From the NCBI GenBank assembly GCA_028826165.1, contig JAPDFW010000092.1, positions 1,054,001-1,118,000 on the forward strand: 64,000 nucleotides of DNA. Reading direction: 5' to 3'. Each line of letters begins with the position of its first letter. Within the stretch, counting starts at the first letter, position 1. A program made the translations under genes and the position numbers. The notes beneath the pieces were generated by a model. The model was not told the DNA's origin, did not search any database, and saw only the letters and a list, made by a program, of their open reading frames with translations. Below are positions 12,941 through 21,817 of the stretch, in pieces. The stretch comes from Anaeramoeba ignava BMAN (Eukaryota; Protista; Anaeramoebae).

Positions 12941-13414
12941 AAATTAATTAATAATAAGAAAATCAAACTTTTTTTTTTTAATTTTTTTTTTCAAAATTTA
13001 ATTCAATTTTAATTTACTTTTAATCAAATTAATTTCTTTAAAATAATAAATAAGAAACAAATTTAATTTTAAATAATTTAATTTTAATTTAAAATATTTA
13101 TTAAAAATTTAATTAATAAAAAATAATCCAAAAAAAAAAATAATAAATTTTAAAAATTGAATATTTTTAATATAATAAATAAAAATAAAAATTGAAAATA
13201 GAAATTAATAATAATTAAATTTAAATTCATTAATTAAAATATTAAAATAAAAAAAATCAAATAAAATTTATTATTTATTAATATTTAGATATTAATAAAT
13301 TATAATCAAAATCAAAAATAGAATAATTAGTAAATTATTTTTTTTAGAAAGTTTATCTTATTCAATCATGTTAAATTCAATTTATTTAAAATTTTTTAAT
13401 TTTTTTAATTTTAT

Positions 13415-13930
13415 TTTTAATATATTTTATTATAATTAAAATTGGAATAATAAATAATTAAAAATATTAATATAATAAATAAAAATATTATATCAAATTA
13501 AAATAAAATCAATCTAAATTAAATTATTATTAAATATTATTAAAATTAAATATATATTTTTATTAAAATATTTATTCCAATTTTTTTAATATATTTTATT
13601 ATAATTAAAATTGAAATAATAAATAATTAAAAAATTATTAATATAATAAATAAAAATATTATTTCAGATTAAAATAAAATAAATCTAAATTAAATTATTG
13701 TTAAATATTATTAAAATTAAATATTTATCTTTATTAAAATATTTCAATTTTCTTTTCAATTTTATTATAATTAAAATTAGAATAATAAATAATCAAAAAT
13801 ATTTAATATAATAAATAAAAATATTATATCAAATTAAAATAAAATAAATCTAAATTAAATTATTGTTAAATATTATTAAAATTAAATATATATTTTTTAT
13901 TAAAAATATTTCAATTTTCTTCTCAATTTT
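13415..13930. repeat. AT-rich tandem repeat, ~167-bp unit, 3 copies
   Basis: 'tataattaaaatt(g/a)(g/a)aataataaataa' at ~13431, 13600 and 13766. Confidence 0.8.
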
Positions 13931-14634
13931 ATTAAATTATTGGGAATAATTTTTATATTGTTTTAACTAAAGAAATGTTAATAAAATATATAAAATAGAA
14001 TTAATTTTAAGTTTAATTATTTAATATTCTTTATTCCATTTTTGAAATAAATTAATTAAAATATTTTATTAATTTTATTAAATTATTTAGAATAATTTTA
14101 TATTATTTTAAATAAAGAAATATTAATAAAATATATAAAATAAAATTAATTTTAAATTTAATTATTTAATATTCTTTATTCCATTTTTGAAATAAATTAA
14201 TTAAAATATTTTATTAATTTTATTAATTATTGGGAATAATTTTATATTATTTTTAAATAAAGAAATATTAATAAAATATATAAAATATAATTAATTTTAA
14301 ATTTAATTATTTAATATTCCTTATTCCATTTTTGAAATAAATTAATTAAAATATTTTATTAATTTTATTAAATTATTGGGAATAATTTTAGATTAATTTA
14401 AATAAAGAAATATTGATTAAATATATAAAATAAAATTAATTTTTAAATTTAATTATTTAATATTCTTTATTTCATTTTTGAAATAAATTAATTAAAATAT
14501 TTTATTAATTTTATTAAATTATTGGGAATAATTTTATATTATTTTAAATAAAGAAATATTAATAAAATATATAAAATATAATTAATTTTAAATTTAATTA
14601 TTTAATATTCTTTATTCTATTTTTGAAATAAATT
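13925..14634. repeat. AT-rich tandem satellite, ~145-bp unit, ~5 copies
   Basis: 'tgggaataat' anchor at ~13941, 14087 (variant), 14231, 14377 and 14523. Confidence 0.85.
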
Positions 14635-14960
14635 AATGAAAAGATTTTATAATTGAAAGAAAAGAAAAACAATATAAATTTCCAAAATTAATATTAATAA
14701 TGAGAAGTGAATTATATCGAGGAATGTTTTTATCTGTAACAGAAGATACTTCTAATAAAGTTAGAGATTATAGTGAATTAAGTAATAAATCATTTCAAAT
14801 ATTTGAATATTGGATTTATTCAAATCAAATTAAAGATGGAATTCAAATTACAAAAGAAATCATTAATGAAATTGAAACTGGAATTGATTATTTTCAATTA
14901 AATCAAACAAATCCAAATTTATTTGATTTATTAATTAATAAATTTAATAATCAAAATTAA
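14635..14960 (+). pseudogene. 3'-terminal fragment of a fourth RCC1-BTB copy
   Basis: Near-identical to 9704-10025 (KDFIIERKEKQYKFPKLILIMRSELYRGMF...NKFNNQN*). It begins abruptly at the end of the satellite and has no 5' part. Confidence 0.85.
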
Positions 14961-15262
14961 AATTAAAATTAAAATTAAAATTAAAATCAAAATTAAAATT
15001 AAAATTAAAATTAAAATTTAAATCAAAATTAAAATTAAAATTAAAATTTAAATCAAAATCAAAATTAAAATTTAAATTAAAATTAAAAATTTTTTTTCTT
15101 TGTTGGAATTTTTGAATCTTTATTTTTGAAAAAGAAAAGCAAAAAGAAGAAAAATTCTGATCAAAACAGAAAAACTTTTTTTTTTTTAATTGAAAAATAA
15201 ATTTTTTTCATTTCTCATTTTTTTCATTTTTTTAATCAAAAAATTCAAAACAGAAATAAAAA

Positions 15263-18200
15263 ATGAAAATTATTGAAAGAATAAAAAAACAAGAAGAAAA
15301 AAACAAAAAGCAAAAGAAATTTGAAGCATTTTTTTCATTTGAATTTTTTCCACCAAAAACAATAACAAGAATTGAAACATTATATGAGAAAATAGAAAGA
15401 TTAATAGAATTATATCCACTTTATATAGACATAACATGGGGAGCAGGAGGTTCAACAAGTGAAAAAACATTAGAAATTGCAACCAAAACACAAAAGTTTC
15501 TTGGAATTGAATCAATGATACATTTAACTTGTTCAAATATGACAAAAGAAAAAATTGATAAAACTCTTTCTCAAGCAAAACAAAATGGAATTCAAAATAT
15601 TTTAGCTTTAAGAGGAGGTTCTTTTTAAATCAAAATCAAAATGAAAATGAAAATTTTTTTTTCAATTAAATTTTCTTTTTGCTTTTTTTTTTTATAGATC
15701 CTCCTCAAGGTTATAAAGAATTTAAAGCAGTTGATTCAAGTTTTCAGCATGCGATTGATTTAGTTAAATATATTAGATCTTCTTATGGAGATTATTTTGG
15801 TATTGCTGTTGGTGGTTATCCTGAAGGTCATTCAGAAGCCAAAAGGTATTTTCCAATTACAAATTATAAATTACAAATTTAAATCAAATATTTAAATCAT
15901 AAATCAAATATTTAAATCAAATATTTAAATCATAAATCAATTATTTTAATCAAATATTTAAATCAATTATTTAAATCAAATATTTAAATCAATTATTTAA
16001 ATCATAAATCAATTATTTAAATCAAATATTTAAATCAATTATTTAAATTAAAATATTTAAATCAAATATTTAAATCAAATATTTAAATCAAATATTTAAA
16101 TTAAATATTAAAATCAAATATTTAAATCATAAATCAATTATTTTAATCAATTATTAAAATCAAATATTTAAATCAATTATTTTAATCAAATATTTAAATC
16201 AATTATTTTAATCAAATATTTAAATCAATTATTTAAATCAAATATTTAAATCATATATTTAAATCATAAATCAATTATTTAAATTAAATATTTAAATCAT
16301 AAATCAAATATTTAAATCATAAATCAAATATTTAAAATCAATTATTTAAATCAAATATATTAAAATCAAATATTTAAAATCAAATATTAAAATAGTTATG
16401 AAGAAGATTTACAACATTTAAAAGAAAAAGTTGATGCAGGTGGAGATTTTATTATAACTCAAATGTTTTTTGATACAAATATTTTTTTAAAATTTGTTCA
16501 AGATTGTAGAAATATTGGTAAATTGAAACAATTTAAAATTAAAAATTAATTCGAAAATTATTTTATAAATTTAAACAAAATTTAAAAGGAATAACTTGTC
16601 CAATAATTCCAGGAATTATGATTGTAGCTGATTATGCTGGATTTAAAAAAATGACAGATTTTACTAAAATGAGTGTTCAAAAAGAAATTATGAATAAACT
16701 TGAAAAAATAAAAGATGATAAAGTTGCAATAACAAATTTTGGAGTTGAATTTGCAATTGATATGTGTAAAAAATTAATTAATGCAAAAGTTCCTGGACTT
16801 CATTTTTATACTTTGAATAGAGATAATGTTACAAAAATTCTTGAAGGATTAGGACTTATTCAAAATTGTAGAAGTAGAAGAGAATATCCTTGGAGAAAAG
16901 TATCTATTCGCAAATTAATATTAAATCAATTATTTAATCAAATATTTTAATCAATTATTAAAATCAATTATTTAAATCAATTATTTAAATTAAATATTAA
17001 AATCAAATATTAAAATCAATTATTAAATCAAATATTTAAATCAAATATTTAAATTAAATATTTAAATCAAAATATTTAAATTAAATATTTAAATCTATTA
17101 TTTAAATCAAAAATCAAATATTAAAATCAAAATTTATTTAAATATTATTTAAATTAAATATTTAAATCAATTATTTAAATTAAATATTTAAATCAATTAT
17201 TTAAATTAAATATTTAAATCAAATATTTAAATCAAAATATTTAAATCAAAATATTTAAATCAAATATTTAAATCAATTATTTAAATTAAATATTTAAATC
17301 AATTATTTAAATCAAATATTAAAATCAAATATTAAAATCAAATATTAAAAATTAAATATTTAAATCAAAAATATTTAAATCAAATATTTAAATCAAATAT
17401 TTTAAATCATAAATCAAATATTTAAATCAATTTTTAAATTAAATATTTAAATTAAATATTAAAATCAAATATTAAATTAAATATTTAAATCAATATTTAA
17501 ATCAAATATTAAATCAAATATTAAAAATCAATTATTTAAATCAAATATTTAAATTAAATATTTAAATCAATTATTAAATCAATTATTAAATCAATATTTA
17601 AATCAATTATTAAATCAAATATTTAAATCAAATATTAAAATCGAATATTAAAAATCAAATATTTAATTTAAATCAAATATTAAATCAATTATTAAAATTA
17701 AATATTTAAATCAAATATTTAAATCAAATATTTAAATTAAATATTTAAAATCAATTATTTAAATCAATTATTTAAATCAATTATTTAAATTAAATATTTA
17801 AAATCAAATATTAAAATCAATTATTAAAATCAAATATTTAATTTAAATATTAAAATCAATTATTAAAATCAATTATTAAAATCAAAATTAAATTTAAATA
17901 TTAAAATCAATTATTTAAATCAAAAATTATATTTAAATCAAAATTATATTTAAATCAAATATTTAAATCAAATATTTAAATCTATTATTTAAATTAAATA
18001 TCTAAATCAATTATTTAAATTAAATATTTAAATTAAATATTAAAATCAAATATTAAATTAAATATTTAAATCAATATTTAAATCAAATATTAAAATCAAA
18101 ATTATATTTAAATCAAATATTTAAATCAAATATTTAAATCAAATATTTAAATTAAATATTTAAATCTAATATTAAATCAAATATTTAAATCAAATATTAA

Positions 18201-19163
18201 AATCAAATATTAAAATCAATTATTAAAATCAAATATTTAAAATTTAAAATTAAGTCTGCTCATCCAAAACGTAAAGATGAAAATGTTAGACCAATTTTCT
18301 GGAAAAATAATAGTCAAGGATACATACATTTAACAGATGATTGGGAATACTTTCCAAAACATTTTTGGAATTCAAAAGTGCAAAAACAAAAATACAAAGA
18401 AATAACAGAAGATTATTTGAAAAAATTTTATGGAATAGAAAAAGATGAAAAAGATTTACCAGAAAACATCAATTCAACAGAAGATATCACAAAATTCTTT
18501 ATTGATTATTATGAAGGAAAAAAGGATTTTTTACCTTGGAATTTAAAACCATTAGGAATTGGAAATTTAATCATTCAAGAAAATTTACTGCATTTATCAA
18601 AATTGGGATTGTTTGTGATTAATAGTCAACCAAGAATAAATGAAGCATTATCAACAGATGATGCAGTTGGATTTGGTGGATTTGGCGGATTCATTTATCA
18701 AAAAAGATATATTGAGTTTTTTATTTCGTTGGAAAAATTGAATATATTATTCAAATATATGGATCAATTCCCAAATATTACTTATCATGCAGTTAATCAT
18801 AATGGAACTAAGATTTTCACAAATGATCCTGATAAACAAACCACCACTGTTTGTTGGGGTGCTTTTGGTTGCGGTGAAATCCAACAACCTCTTATTGTTG
18901 ATCCTATTTGTTTTGAAACTATTTGGAAAAATGAAGCTTTTGGAATTTGGACTAATGTTTTTGGTCAATATTACAAAAAAGATTCTACTTCTTTTAAGAT
19001 TCTTCAAGATATTCATGATAATTATTTCTTGATGAATATTATTGACCATGATTTTGTTACTCCATCTCAAGTAGGAAGAAGTGTTTGGCAATTATTTCTG
19101 ATTTTGGAAAACCATCTTTCTAATCAAAATCAAAATCAAAATCAAAATCAAAATCAAAATTAA
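15263..19163 (+). CDS. MTHFR: Methylenetetrahydrofolate reductase, eukaryotic type with C-terminal regulatory domain; 5 exons (15263-15617, 15698-15845, 16396-16517, 16589-16899, 18255-19163)
   Basis: [90 protein letters not shown] and INSQP. All joins are GT-AG and in frame. Confidence 0.95.
15860..16390. repeat. Intronic ~13-bp minisatellite (AAATCAAATATTT / AAATCAATTATTT)
   Basis: Fills MTHFR intron 2. Confidence 0.85.
16915..18250. repeat. Intronic ~13-bp minisatellite, same family as intron 2
   Basis: Fills the 1.35-kb MTHFR intron 4. Confidence 0.85.
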
Positions 19164-19283
19164 AATTAAAATCAAAATTAAAATTAAAATTAAATTCAAA
19201 TTCAAAAATCAAAATCAAAATCAAAATTAAAATTAAAATCAAAATTAAAATCAAAATCAAAATCAAAAATTAAAAATTTTTTA

Positions 19284-20464
19284 TTAATGAACTGAAATAT
19301 TTTGAATAGAAAGATTAATTGTTGTTAAATCTGGATTTTTTGAATAATCAATCTGAAGAATAGCTGCAGAAATTTCACCAGTTTTTTGAGAGAAAAAAAT
19401 ATCAAAATCTGTTCCAAGATTTGGAATTTTTTGTTGAATCTGTTCAATAAAAATTGGAATTGTAAATTGAGAATAAACTTCAAATTGATTTTTTGGATCT
19501 CCTCCTTCATGAGTTTTGGTAAGTGAATAAAGTGAGTCTTTGCAAGAAGCTTGATTTTTAAAAATTGATGCAGGTAAATTTAATTTGGAGATATTTGGAT
19601 CAGAAGAAGGAATTAAGAAGAAATTTAAACTTTTATTTCCAACAGAAAAATATTCATTGAAAAACCAATAATTTTTTGAAATATTTTGAAATTGTTGATG
19701 ATGATCTGAAATATTTGTGATCGATAAATTTGCAGAATATTGATTTGGAAGCGATTTTGAGTAATCGAACTGAGTTAATTGGAATTGAAATGATTGATTT
19801 CCTTTTTGGATTGAGATATTTACAAATTCAGTTAGAGTTGGATTACTGAATGAATAAGAATCAAAACGAGAATTATAATCATATTGTAAACAATGTTTTC
19901 CGTATCCTCTTGGTGAATCTAGACAGCAAAGAACATATTTTTCATCTCCGTTTTCTGTAGGCGGTTGATTTGAAATTTCAGAACATGATCCAATATCAAA
20001 AGATAACGGACATGATTCATCATATTCAAAATTCTCATAAACATTGAAAAATGTTTGAGAAAAACTTAAAGGCCAAAAAACTAATGATGGAATTCTTTGT
20101 ATTGTTATTAATATTGATTCATCTAGAAAATATTCTTGTGATTCTGATTCAAATGATTCAAATTTTTCAAAAAAGAATAAATGATCACAATCTTGAGTTA
20201 TTTCAACATTCAATTCTGTTAAACAACTAAAAAATTTTTATATCAAATCAATTAAATTTTAATTTAATTTTAATTCAATTTAGATTTAAATTTAGATTTA
20301 GATTTTTTTAGATCAATTTGATCTCATTTTTTTTTTTACATTTCATTTCCATTAATTTCTTCACAAATTGGTTTTTTCCAAGATTCCAAATTACATAAAG
20401 AAAAAAGAGGAAAATGAAAAAAAATTAATATTAAATTGAAACAATTCAAAATGGAAAAAATCAT
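19284..20464 (-). CDS. Divergent HAP2/GCS1 (fusexin)-like protein: signal peptide + domains I/II only, ~355 aa; exons 20464-20340 and 20226-19284
   Basis: Hydrophobic N-terminus MIFSILNCFNLILIFFHFPLFSLC. Colinear HAP2-like motifs: C-x8-C then LNVEI, ILITIQR..LVFWPLSF, VLCC..R..KHCLQYD...FDSYSF, NFFLIP...SKLNLPASIFKNQASC...KNQF, and terminal TTINLSIQ. Confidence 0.7.
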
Positions 20465-20692: not shown

Positions 20693-21817
20693 ATGTATGA
20701 CGAATATTCACCGGAAGCAATTATAATGGATAACGGAAGCTTTGAAATACGAACAGGATTTGCAGGAGATGATGCCCCTAAAGTAATCACACGAAATATT
20801 GTGGGAAATCTAATAAACGAAACAAACTTAAATGATATTAACAAAACAGAATACATTGGAAATGAAACTCAATCAAAAAGAGAAATATTAAATTTAACTT
20901 ATCCAATTCAAAGAGGAATTATTCAAGATTGGGATAATATGGAGAAAATTTGGAATTACATTTTTACTTCTCAATTAAAAGTTGATCCAAAAAATCATCC
21001 ATTTATGATGAATGATATTCCATTTAGCTCAAAATCTTCAAAAGAAAAAATATGTCAAATTATGTTTGAAACATTTGATTTTCCATCATTTTATATGAAA
21101 AATTCAACAAATTTAGCGTTATATTCATCAGGAAGAGTAACAGGAATAGTTTTTGATATTGGACATGGAATTACAAGTCTTGAACCGATTTATGAAGGAC
21201 ATGAAATTACACAAGGATTTGACAAATATAATATTTCAGGAATTGACGTAACTGATTATTTAATCAAATTAGTTGAAAATCAAGGATATTCATTTAAAAC
21301 AAGCAATGAAATTGAAATTGCAAGAGAAATCAAAGAAAAATTATGTTTTTGTTCACTAAATTATGAAGAAGAATTAAAAGGAAATCAAAATGAACTAGAA
21401 AAAGAATATGAATTAAAAAATGGAGATATTATCACAATTTCAGAAGAAAGAATGAAATGTTGTGAATGTTTATTTAATCCAAAATTAATTGGAGTTGATC
21501 TAGAAGGAATTCATAAATTGATTTATAATTCAATTATGGAATGTGATATTGATCTCAGAAAAGATCTTTTTGAAAATATTGTTTTATCAGGAGGAACAAC
21601 ATTAATTCCAAATTTTAATGAAAGACTTAAAAAAGAAATTGAGTTGTTAGCTCCTAAACAAACAAAAATTCATATTGTTTCAGTTCCTGAACGTAAATTT
21701 TTAACTTGGATTGGTGGATCTATTTTAGGATCATTAACTGCTTATAAAAATATGTGGATTCCCAAAGAAGACTATGAAGAATATGGACCAAGTATTGTTG
21801 ATCGGAGATTCTATTAA
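20693..21817 (+). CDS. Divergent actin / actin-related protein (374 aa, intronless)
   Basis: IIMDNGS...[67 protein letters not shown] and [10 protein letters not shown]. Many substitutions relative to conventional actin. Confidence 0.93.

Follow-up and report, generated by a model that had tools for sequence, protein, structure and literature searches.

Introduction

To our knowledge, every cellular protein of the class II fold described so far, namely HAP2, EFF-1/AFF-1 and archaeal Fsx1, is a membrane-anchored fusogen of at least three domains. Here we describe a gene of the protist Anaeramoeba ignava, referred to below as the HAP2-like gene, whose product differs from these proteins. The gene was read from a stretch of 64,000 nt of genomic DNA (G000:C82:1054001-1118000; this stretch is called the window, and all coordinates are positions in it). 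It codes for a secretory-pathway protein of the class II fold that consists of domains I and II only and that has been under long-term purifying selection. The two domains form a disulfide-rich rod, and the protein is a distant paralogue of the gamete fusogen HAP2.

The closest described system is HAP2/GCS1 (PF10699; structures 5MF1, 5OW3, 5OW4, 6DBS, 6E18 and 7S0K). Domains I and II are common to both, with VIA Z scores from 15.3 to 10.3, and the HAP2-like protein also shares with HAP2 the HCLR(F/Y) strand, the W-rich and AxC motifs, an N-terminal signal peptide and a Cys-rich domain II. In contrast to HAP2, it has neither domain III nor stem, transmembrane helix or cytoplasmic tail, its family has motifs of its own (YNxYE, RGxG, TxTH and DQ), and it is about 350 amino acids long compared with about 600-1200 for HAP2. 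Fsx1, EFF-1/AFF-1 and the viral class II proteins (flavivirus E, alphavirus E1, bunyavirus Gc) have the architecture of domains I and II in common with the HAP2-like protein as well (VIA Z scores of about 7.5-10). They are, however, membrane-anchored, fusogenic and composed of three domains (four in the case of Fsx1), and they are structurally less similar to it than HAP2 is. Soluble fragments limited to domains I and II have been engineered from alphavirus E1 and dengue E. They can assemble into core trimers on membranes, isolated domain III acts as a fusion inhibitor, and it is thereby seen how partial class II proteins can modulate fusion. These laboratory fragments have the same domain content as the HAP2-like protein, but they are artificial and have kept the hydrophobic fusion loop, whereas the HAP2-like family is natural and its loop is mostly polar. 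The regulation and the partners of HAP2 are poorly known outside Chlamydomonas, Tetrahymena and Arabidopsis.

Results

Gene model and predicted fold

The HAP2-like gene is located on the minus strand and comprises two exons with an intact open reading frame (ORF) for a product of 355 amino acids. The ATG is found at 20464, and the frame closes after 42 codons unless the GT donor at 20339-20338 is used; the acceptor AG at 20228-20227 brings the gene back into frame. The product is identical to the deposited model M0811_02030 (NCBI, Anaeramoeba ignava, 355 aa; P0001 in the following). Exon 1 corresponds to P0001 residues 1-41 plus 2 nt, so that the N-terminus of P0001 equals exon 1 and a split Ile codon, and exon 2 is 100 % identical to residues 43-355. 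Exon 2 served as search query, and P0001 was used wherever the entire product was needed.

A model of the protein was calculated with AlphaFold2 from the family alignment A1 (31 sequences, described below) as the only input, with neither HAP2 rows nor templates. It reached a predicted local distance difference test (pLDDT) value of 90.7 and a predicted template modelling score (pTM) of 0.80, and a single-sequence prediction of exon 2 gave a pLDDT of 32.6. According to this model the class II core is present: a beta-sandwich domain I with two excursions that form an elongated domain II. In a Foldseek comparison with the PDB the top eight matches were HAP2 chains (E values of 4.1e-13 to 1.4e-9, template modelling (TM) scores by query of about 0.5), followed by bunyavirus Gc, an endogenous-virus glycoprotein of hookworm, flavivirus E and EFF-1. 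At E <= 1e-3 the model matches 277 PDB chains, and the ones listed belong to class II. The best structural alignment by VIA was obtained with HAP2 7S0K (Z 15.3, root-mean-square deviation 4.5, 287 residues, model residues 26-355). Other full HAP2 ectodomains had Z scores of 14.1-11.9, a protease-resistant fragment of Trypanosoma cruzi HAP2 had 10.3, and Fsx1 (10.0), Gc of Crimean-Congo haemorrhagic fever virus (9.8), EFF-1 (9.3) and alphavirus E1 (about 7.5-8) came after these. The VIA alignments span 260-287 residues within residues 20-355 of the model, and the sequence identity within the structural alignments is 12-15 %. A shape search of the ESM Atlas returned a plant HAP2 cluster with a TM score of 0.66 over 297 residues and other rows of at most 0.25; the feature search of the same resource gave no usable match, and a viral library (BFVD) yielded more distant class II glycoproteins only. 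The predicted fold is thus class II with HAP2 as the nearest relative. A homotrimer prediction with three copies of residues 24-355 had a score of 0.00; the alignment was not used in this calculation, the fold was uncertain, and the result is evidence neither way.

Relationship to HAP2 at the sequence level

The sequence relationship to HAP2 became apparent with hhalign, in which the family profile was compared with single HAP2 sequences, as a word-index search with a HAP2 exon had returned no matches for a HAP2 profile. The exon of the canonical A. ignava HAP2 gene that codes for the CC...HCLRF region was aligned with a probability of 92.9 % and an E value of 3.6e-7 over 130 collinear columns. 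In this alignment HCLQYDY of the protein (HCLRYDY in the family) is paired with HCLRFSW of HAP2, the W-rich and AxC motifs follow in collinear order, and the first half of the second conserved block of domain II (Table 1) is aligned to the NWML...AF...AC region. The family LCC is set against the later LSC of HAP2 and not against its CCTC. HAP2 exon 1 gave a collinear alignment of low significance (E 0.0013, probability 18 %), and no alignment was obtained with the last HAP2 exon or for the C-terminal third. Three relatives match PF10699 below the cut-off (19.5, 15.0 and 14.8 bits versus a gathering threshold of 27.4 bits; best E 4e-4), all three at profile positions 120-235, and these matches include the first conserved block of domain II. 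A BLASTP comparison with the canonical HAP2 exons found only a weak HCL match (E 0.004) and none for exon 1, and a phmmer search of the PDB with exon 2 gave no match. At the sequence level the family is hence a remote homologue of HAP2 and not a member that Pfam would recognise. The original prediction, made by inspection of the DNA, had matched the motifs in order to those of the HAP2 ectodomain and had proposed a class II fold to be checked with AlphaFold and Foldseek. The hhalign result, the fold and the ESM Atlas search agree in substance with these motif matches, and HAP2 ranks first in Foldseek, VIA and the ESM Atlas.

Ends of the protein

P0001 has a hydrophobic, signal-peptide-like N-terminus and no further hydrophobic window of 19 residues. 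Residues 1-25 have a low pLDDT in the AlphaFold2 model, which places a helix at residues 3-14. The N-terminal hydrophobic run extends over about 22 residues in the A. ignava protein and over 9-15 residues in other members of the family, the latter being typical of cleaved signal peptides. Outside the N-terminus no complete family member has a hydrophobic 19-residue window, and stem and C-terminal transmembrane anchor are absent from the complete members.

At the other end of the chain an Ig-like domain III is absent, the protein terminating one residue after the final strand of domain I. By VIA the model, up to its end, is aligned to residues 1-290 of alphavirus E1, 10-292 of dengue E and 24-456 of Chlamydomonas HAP2, and it is at these points that the linker to domain III begins in the three proteins. 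In about 15 members whose C-terminus is complete, the chain ends within 0-8 residues of the same strand. This shared stop position is found in at least three eukaryotic groups and includes transcript-derived ORFs and uninterrupted, intron-free contig ORFs; in two other genomes a convergent gene is located 0-5 bp beyond the stop of the family member. In A. ignava the convergent MTHFR ORF (PF21895, E 1.3e-51) terminates at 19163, which leaves 120 bp up to the stop of the HAP2-like gene, and a listing of minus-strand ORFs of at least 70 amino acids in 13000-19283 contained none except one antisense to MTHFR. A missed domain III or transmembrane exon downstream of the gene is very unlikely because of the common C-terminus of the family, the lack of hydrophobic windows, the convergent neighbours and the absence of a coding minus-strand ORF beyond MTHFR.

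These data bear out what had been supposed about the architecture of the gene. The proposed two-exon frame of about 355 codons with a signal peptide equals P0001 with its hydrophobic, signal-peptide-like N-terminus, and the MTHFR stop, estimated to be about 120 bp away, lies at exactly this distance. The hydrophobicity scan and the ORF listing agree with the assumed lack of a transmembrane helix and of room for domain III exons. Likewise, the end of the model matches the junction of domains I and III in class II proteins, in line with the assumption that the chain stops near the linker to domain III.

A conserved family in protists

An exhaustive phmmer search of 1.84 billion representatives identified 29 relatives at E <= 1e-3, of which 13 also pass E <= 1e-10; a word-index search with the family alignment added no further members. 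The relatives have lengths of 92-392 amino acids (325-392 if complete), and the complete ones have a signal peptide, no transmembrane helix and a common C-terminal end. Named sources are Anaeramoeba flamelloides (KAJ6230413.1), Acanthamoeba castellanii (ELR18566.1, ACA1_155120, partial), Balamuthia mandrillaris (KAL6078216.1) and Entosiphon sulcatum (EukProt transcript), and the remaining members derive from metagenomes and public run assemblies. The groups covered are Anaeramoebae, Amoebozoa and one euglenid. The orthologue of A. flamelloides is 37 % identical to the A. ignava protein. In a maximum-likelihood tree the two Anaeramoeba species form a pair, and Balamuthia groups with Acanthamoeba with weaker support (87/54); the tree fits vertical descent, although its branches are long. 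The A. ignava gene therefore belongs to a conserved, hitherto unnamed family of anchor-less proteins of about 350 amino acids and is not the peculiarity of a single genome. The UniRef label of the HAP2-like protein is 'Transmembrane protein', other members are labelled 'hypothetical' or 'uncharacterized' in the databases, and in the literature searched neither a natural HAP2 paralogue confined to domains I and II nor any of the members' accessions was mentioned.

Five residues are invariant in alignment A1 (C123, C142, C143, G151 and C154), and the consensus motifs are YNxYE, GxC, VLCC, RGxGxHCLRYDYxxxY, WF, WxxxAxC, TxTH and DQ. Conservation is concentrated in two blocks of domain II, residues 103-166 and 244-289, which hold 31 of the 36 columns that are conserved to at least 70 %.

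The region that corresponds to the fusion loop

From C143 to H153 there are nine residues, among them one Arg, which in the model make a tight turn between the strands 141-146 and 149-168; at the same place the canonical A. ignava HAP2 has 30 residues. The original prediction had described a short stretch between CC and HC with an apparently deleted fusion loop, and nine residues including one Arg are indeed found between C142-C143 and H153-C154, the extended fusion-loop segment of HAP2 being missing. The consensus of this cd turn across the family is RGxG (Arg-Gly-x-Gly) and mostly polar. The apex residue is Tyr in the A. ignava protein, Trp in three, aliphatic in five and polar in 22 of the 31 members, so that hydrophobicity at the apex of this turn has not been conserved in the family.

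Three members (P0007, P0011 and P0018) read RGWGQHC in the cd turn. The core of the flavivirus E fusion loop is compact and reads RGWGNGC. The family spacing C-x4-6-R-G-x-G-x-x-C resembles this loop, a likeness that may be ancestral or due to chance.

Full-length HAP2 genes of A. ignava

The same genome was searched for a full-length HAP2, as had been suggested, and a canonical gene was found together with a divergent paralogue. The canonical gene is located on the minus strand of contig C137 (L001, G000:C137:93651-97205) and has at least four coding exons that provide domain III, a transmembrane helix and a Cys-rich basic tail. Each of two exons scores about 180 bits with PF10699, and the one exon used as a query found solved HAP2 chains with E values as low as 2e-27. 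The paralogue on contig C98 (L007:3884-7441) is a single exon for 1186 amino acids with a PF10699 score of 66.9 bits; it has a transmembrane helix near residue 840 and has kept its membrane anchor and extra domains. Like the HAP2-like protein, it is derived from HAP2 and kept beside the canonical gene. Contrary to the HAP2-like protein it passes PF10699 and is anchored, and the two lack detectable sequence similarity: neither BLASTP nor hhalign found any between this paralogue and the HAP2-like protein or its family. A second copy of the HAP2-like gene was not found in the A. ignava genome with either the protein or the family hidden Markov model (HMM), nor did either query retrieve the HAP2 genes. 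The hint of cryptic sex that the original prediction had drawn from the HAP2-like gene is better based on the full-length HAP2 gene.

Two canonical HAP2 introns, of about 0.35 and 0.55 kb, are made up almost wholly of (GATTTT/AATTTT)n, and the same type of repeat fills the intergenic spacers of the window.

Locus and neighbouring genes

The features of the HAP2-like gene are compiled in Table 1.

Table 1. Coordinates of the HAP2-like gene, of its conserved regions and of the adjoining spacer
Feature	Position	Strand	Description
Exon 1	20340..20464	-	Start codon, signal-peptide-like N-terminus (approximately residues 1-24) and beginning of domain I with the first Cys pair
Intron	20227..20339	-	113 nt, GT..AG, AT-rich simple repeats; splicing gives P0001 exactly
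Exon 2	19284..20226	-	Remaining parts of domains I and II; stop TAA at 19286-19284
Domain II block 1 (residues 103-166)	19854..20045	-	YNxYE, two Cys, LCC, short Arg-Gly-x-Gly cd turn, HCL(R/Q)YDY strand
Domain II block 2 (residues 244-289)	19485..19622	-	(W/F)F, (W/F)xxxAxC, TxTH, (D/N)Q
Last domain I beta-strand (residues 343-354)	19290..19325	-	AlphaFold2 strand E343-354; the protein ends one residue later
Spacer	19164..19283	.	120-bp hexanucleotide repeat between the stops of the HAP2-like gene and the convergent MTHFR gene

The last exon of the MTHFR gene runs into a hexanucleotide satellite, which gives the product an (NQ)n tail before the stop at 19163 (window 19100-19283). The satellite reaches the stop of the HAP2-like gene, so that simple repeat alone parts the two convergent genes. 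On the other side a gene of the actin family (20693-21817, plus strand, 374 aa, PF00022 E 1.6e-113) is arranged divergently to the HAP2-like gene, from which it is separated by a repeat-rich spacer of 228 bp. Its product differs clearly from conventional actin and may represent an actin-related protein.

The Balamuthia orthologue (L010:8001-9750, JAVKOQ020000008.1) occupies 1750 bp for 353 amino acids and hence has introns. Its downstream neighbour on the same strand codes for a low-complexity, disordered protein of 528 amino acids with PPLPSPP repeats and with neither a signal peptide nor a transmembrane helix. This neighbour was considered as the second half of a split fusogen and was rejected, as it is a disordered protein and not a domain III or transmembrane protein.

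Discussion

The HAP2-like protein is probably a naturally occurring variant of a fusion protein that does not itself cause fusion. As possible functions the original prediction had named a decoy, a mating signal and one half of a split fusogen. By the known class II mechanism the protein cannot drive the fold-back that merges membranes, because domain III, stem and anchor are missing, and the long hydrophobic fusion loops of HAP2 apparently are as well. Because nearly all conserved residues lie in the distal (tip) half of domain II, as deduced from the order in which secondary-structure elements follow each other in the model, we assume that this half serves as a binding module, and it would then present a soluble binding surface to the extracellular space. 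The likeliest setting would be a pathway of cell-cell recognition or fusion, in which the protein would act as a partner, a chaperone-like factor or an inhibitor of anchored HAP2-type fusogens. We tentatively favour such a role, with the soluble protein taking part in HAP2-type cell-cell recognition or fusion as a partner or as a regulator, without going as far as to call it probable. A bolder proposal is that of an ancient, possibly early-eukaryotic family of soluble, non-fusogenic HAP2 paralogues that bind anchored HAP2-type fusogens or the target membrane and thereby control when and with whom cells fuse, be it as dominant-negative forms, as a block to re-fusion or as a partner on the opposite cell; taken as a whole we consider it unlikely.

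Several observations speak against a partner or regulator of HAP2. No family member was found by phmmer at E <= 1e-3 in Chlamydomonas, Tetrahymena, Dictyostelium, plants or Plasmodium, and the protein is therefore not a universal HAP2 cofactor. The tips of HAP2 vary between lineages, and the conservation of the tip motifs of the family across supergroups is explained no less well by a universal ligand, such as a lipid or glycan, than by a partner role with HAP2. As to homology itself, neither P0001 nor exon 2 matches PF10699 at E <= 1, and the protein has no Pfam match at all. The family HMM found no HAP2 either in the PDB, where only a chance antibody match occurred, or in the A. ignava genome (HMMER). 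Finally, a single public sequencing run contains part of the stretch.

A function outside sexual or cell-cell fusion is accordingly to be considered, namely that of a secreted or lumenal binding protein of phagotrophs whose polar domain II tip binds a universal ligand; this ligand might be a glycan, the head group of a membrane lipid or the surface of prey, of bacteria or of the cyst wall. All named hosts (Anaeramoeba, Acanthamoeba, Balamuthia and Entosiphon) are free-living phagotrophs, and this explanation would also account for a family that was not found in the classic HAP2 model organisms at E <= 1e-3 and that has kept YNxYE, RGxG, HCLRYDY, TxTH and DQ across supergroups, while the tips of HAP2 vary between lineages. 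Moreover, the similarity to the HAP2 of the same species is limited to one core segment, which makes mixed trimers less likely. Yet the characterised cellular relatives of the fold (HAP2, EFF-1/AFF-1 and Fsx1) all act in membrane fusion, and the A. ignava genome has kept two anchored HAP2-type genes, so that we regard a role apart from fusion as possible but doubtful. It is improbable, on the other hand, that the protein is one half of a split or tethered fusogen, in which the rod would be held by a separate partner with domain III and transmembrane helix or by an uncleaved signal anchor and would join in the merger of membranes. The N-terminal hydrophobic run of about 22 residues in A. ignava, the UniRef label and the aromatic or aliphatic RGxG apex of nine of the 31 members would be in line with it; the hydrophobic regions of other members are, however, short (9-15 residues), the apex is polar in most of them, nothing in the family resembles domain III, no partner gene adjoins the gene in A. 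ignava, and the neighbour in Balamuthia is disordered.

Two further explanations are to be weighed. One is an annotation artefact or a decaying fragment, i.e. a truncated HAP2 pseudogene or a gene model with missed downstream exons. The canonical HAP2 introns do share their type of simple repeat with the 3' spacer of the HAP2-like gene. But the ORF shows no damage, 31 sequences share five invariant positions, homologues of at least three eukaryotic groups stop at the identical position, transcript-derived and intron-free ORFs among them, and the 120 bp after the stop lead directly into the convergent MTHFR gene, with no coding minus-strand ORF beyond; we consider this explanation very improbable. 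The other is that the resemblance to HAP2 does not reflect homology and is instead owed to convergence on an elongated beta-fold or to bias in the structure prediction. Searches at the level of HMMER leave the family and HAP2 unlinked, the identity in the structural alignments is low (12-15 %), and hhalign is blank for the C-terminal third. Against this stand the 130 collinear columns at E 3.6e-7, which include the HAP2 signature HCLR(F/Y), the three independent sub-threshold matches to PF10699 in one region of the profile (best E 4e-4), a model made with neither templates nor HAP2 rows, and HAP2 chains that are clearly above all other class II proteins in VIA, and we give hardly any credence to a chance resemblance.

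A conserved, naturally secreted protein limited to domains I and II would mean that the fusexin scaffold has also been put to uses other than the execution of fusion. If the protein is indeed a regulator, it would be the first fusexin of cellular origin with a role in the control of fusion instead of its execution. The family provides a concrete handle on the regulation and partnering of HAP2, and its culturable hosts Acanthamoeba and Balamuthia open the idea to direct tests. The family, taken with the full-length HAP2 genes, is a further indication that a cell-fusion machinery has been kept in Anaeramoeba.

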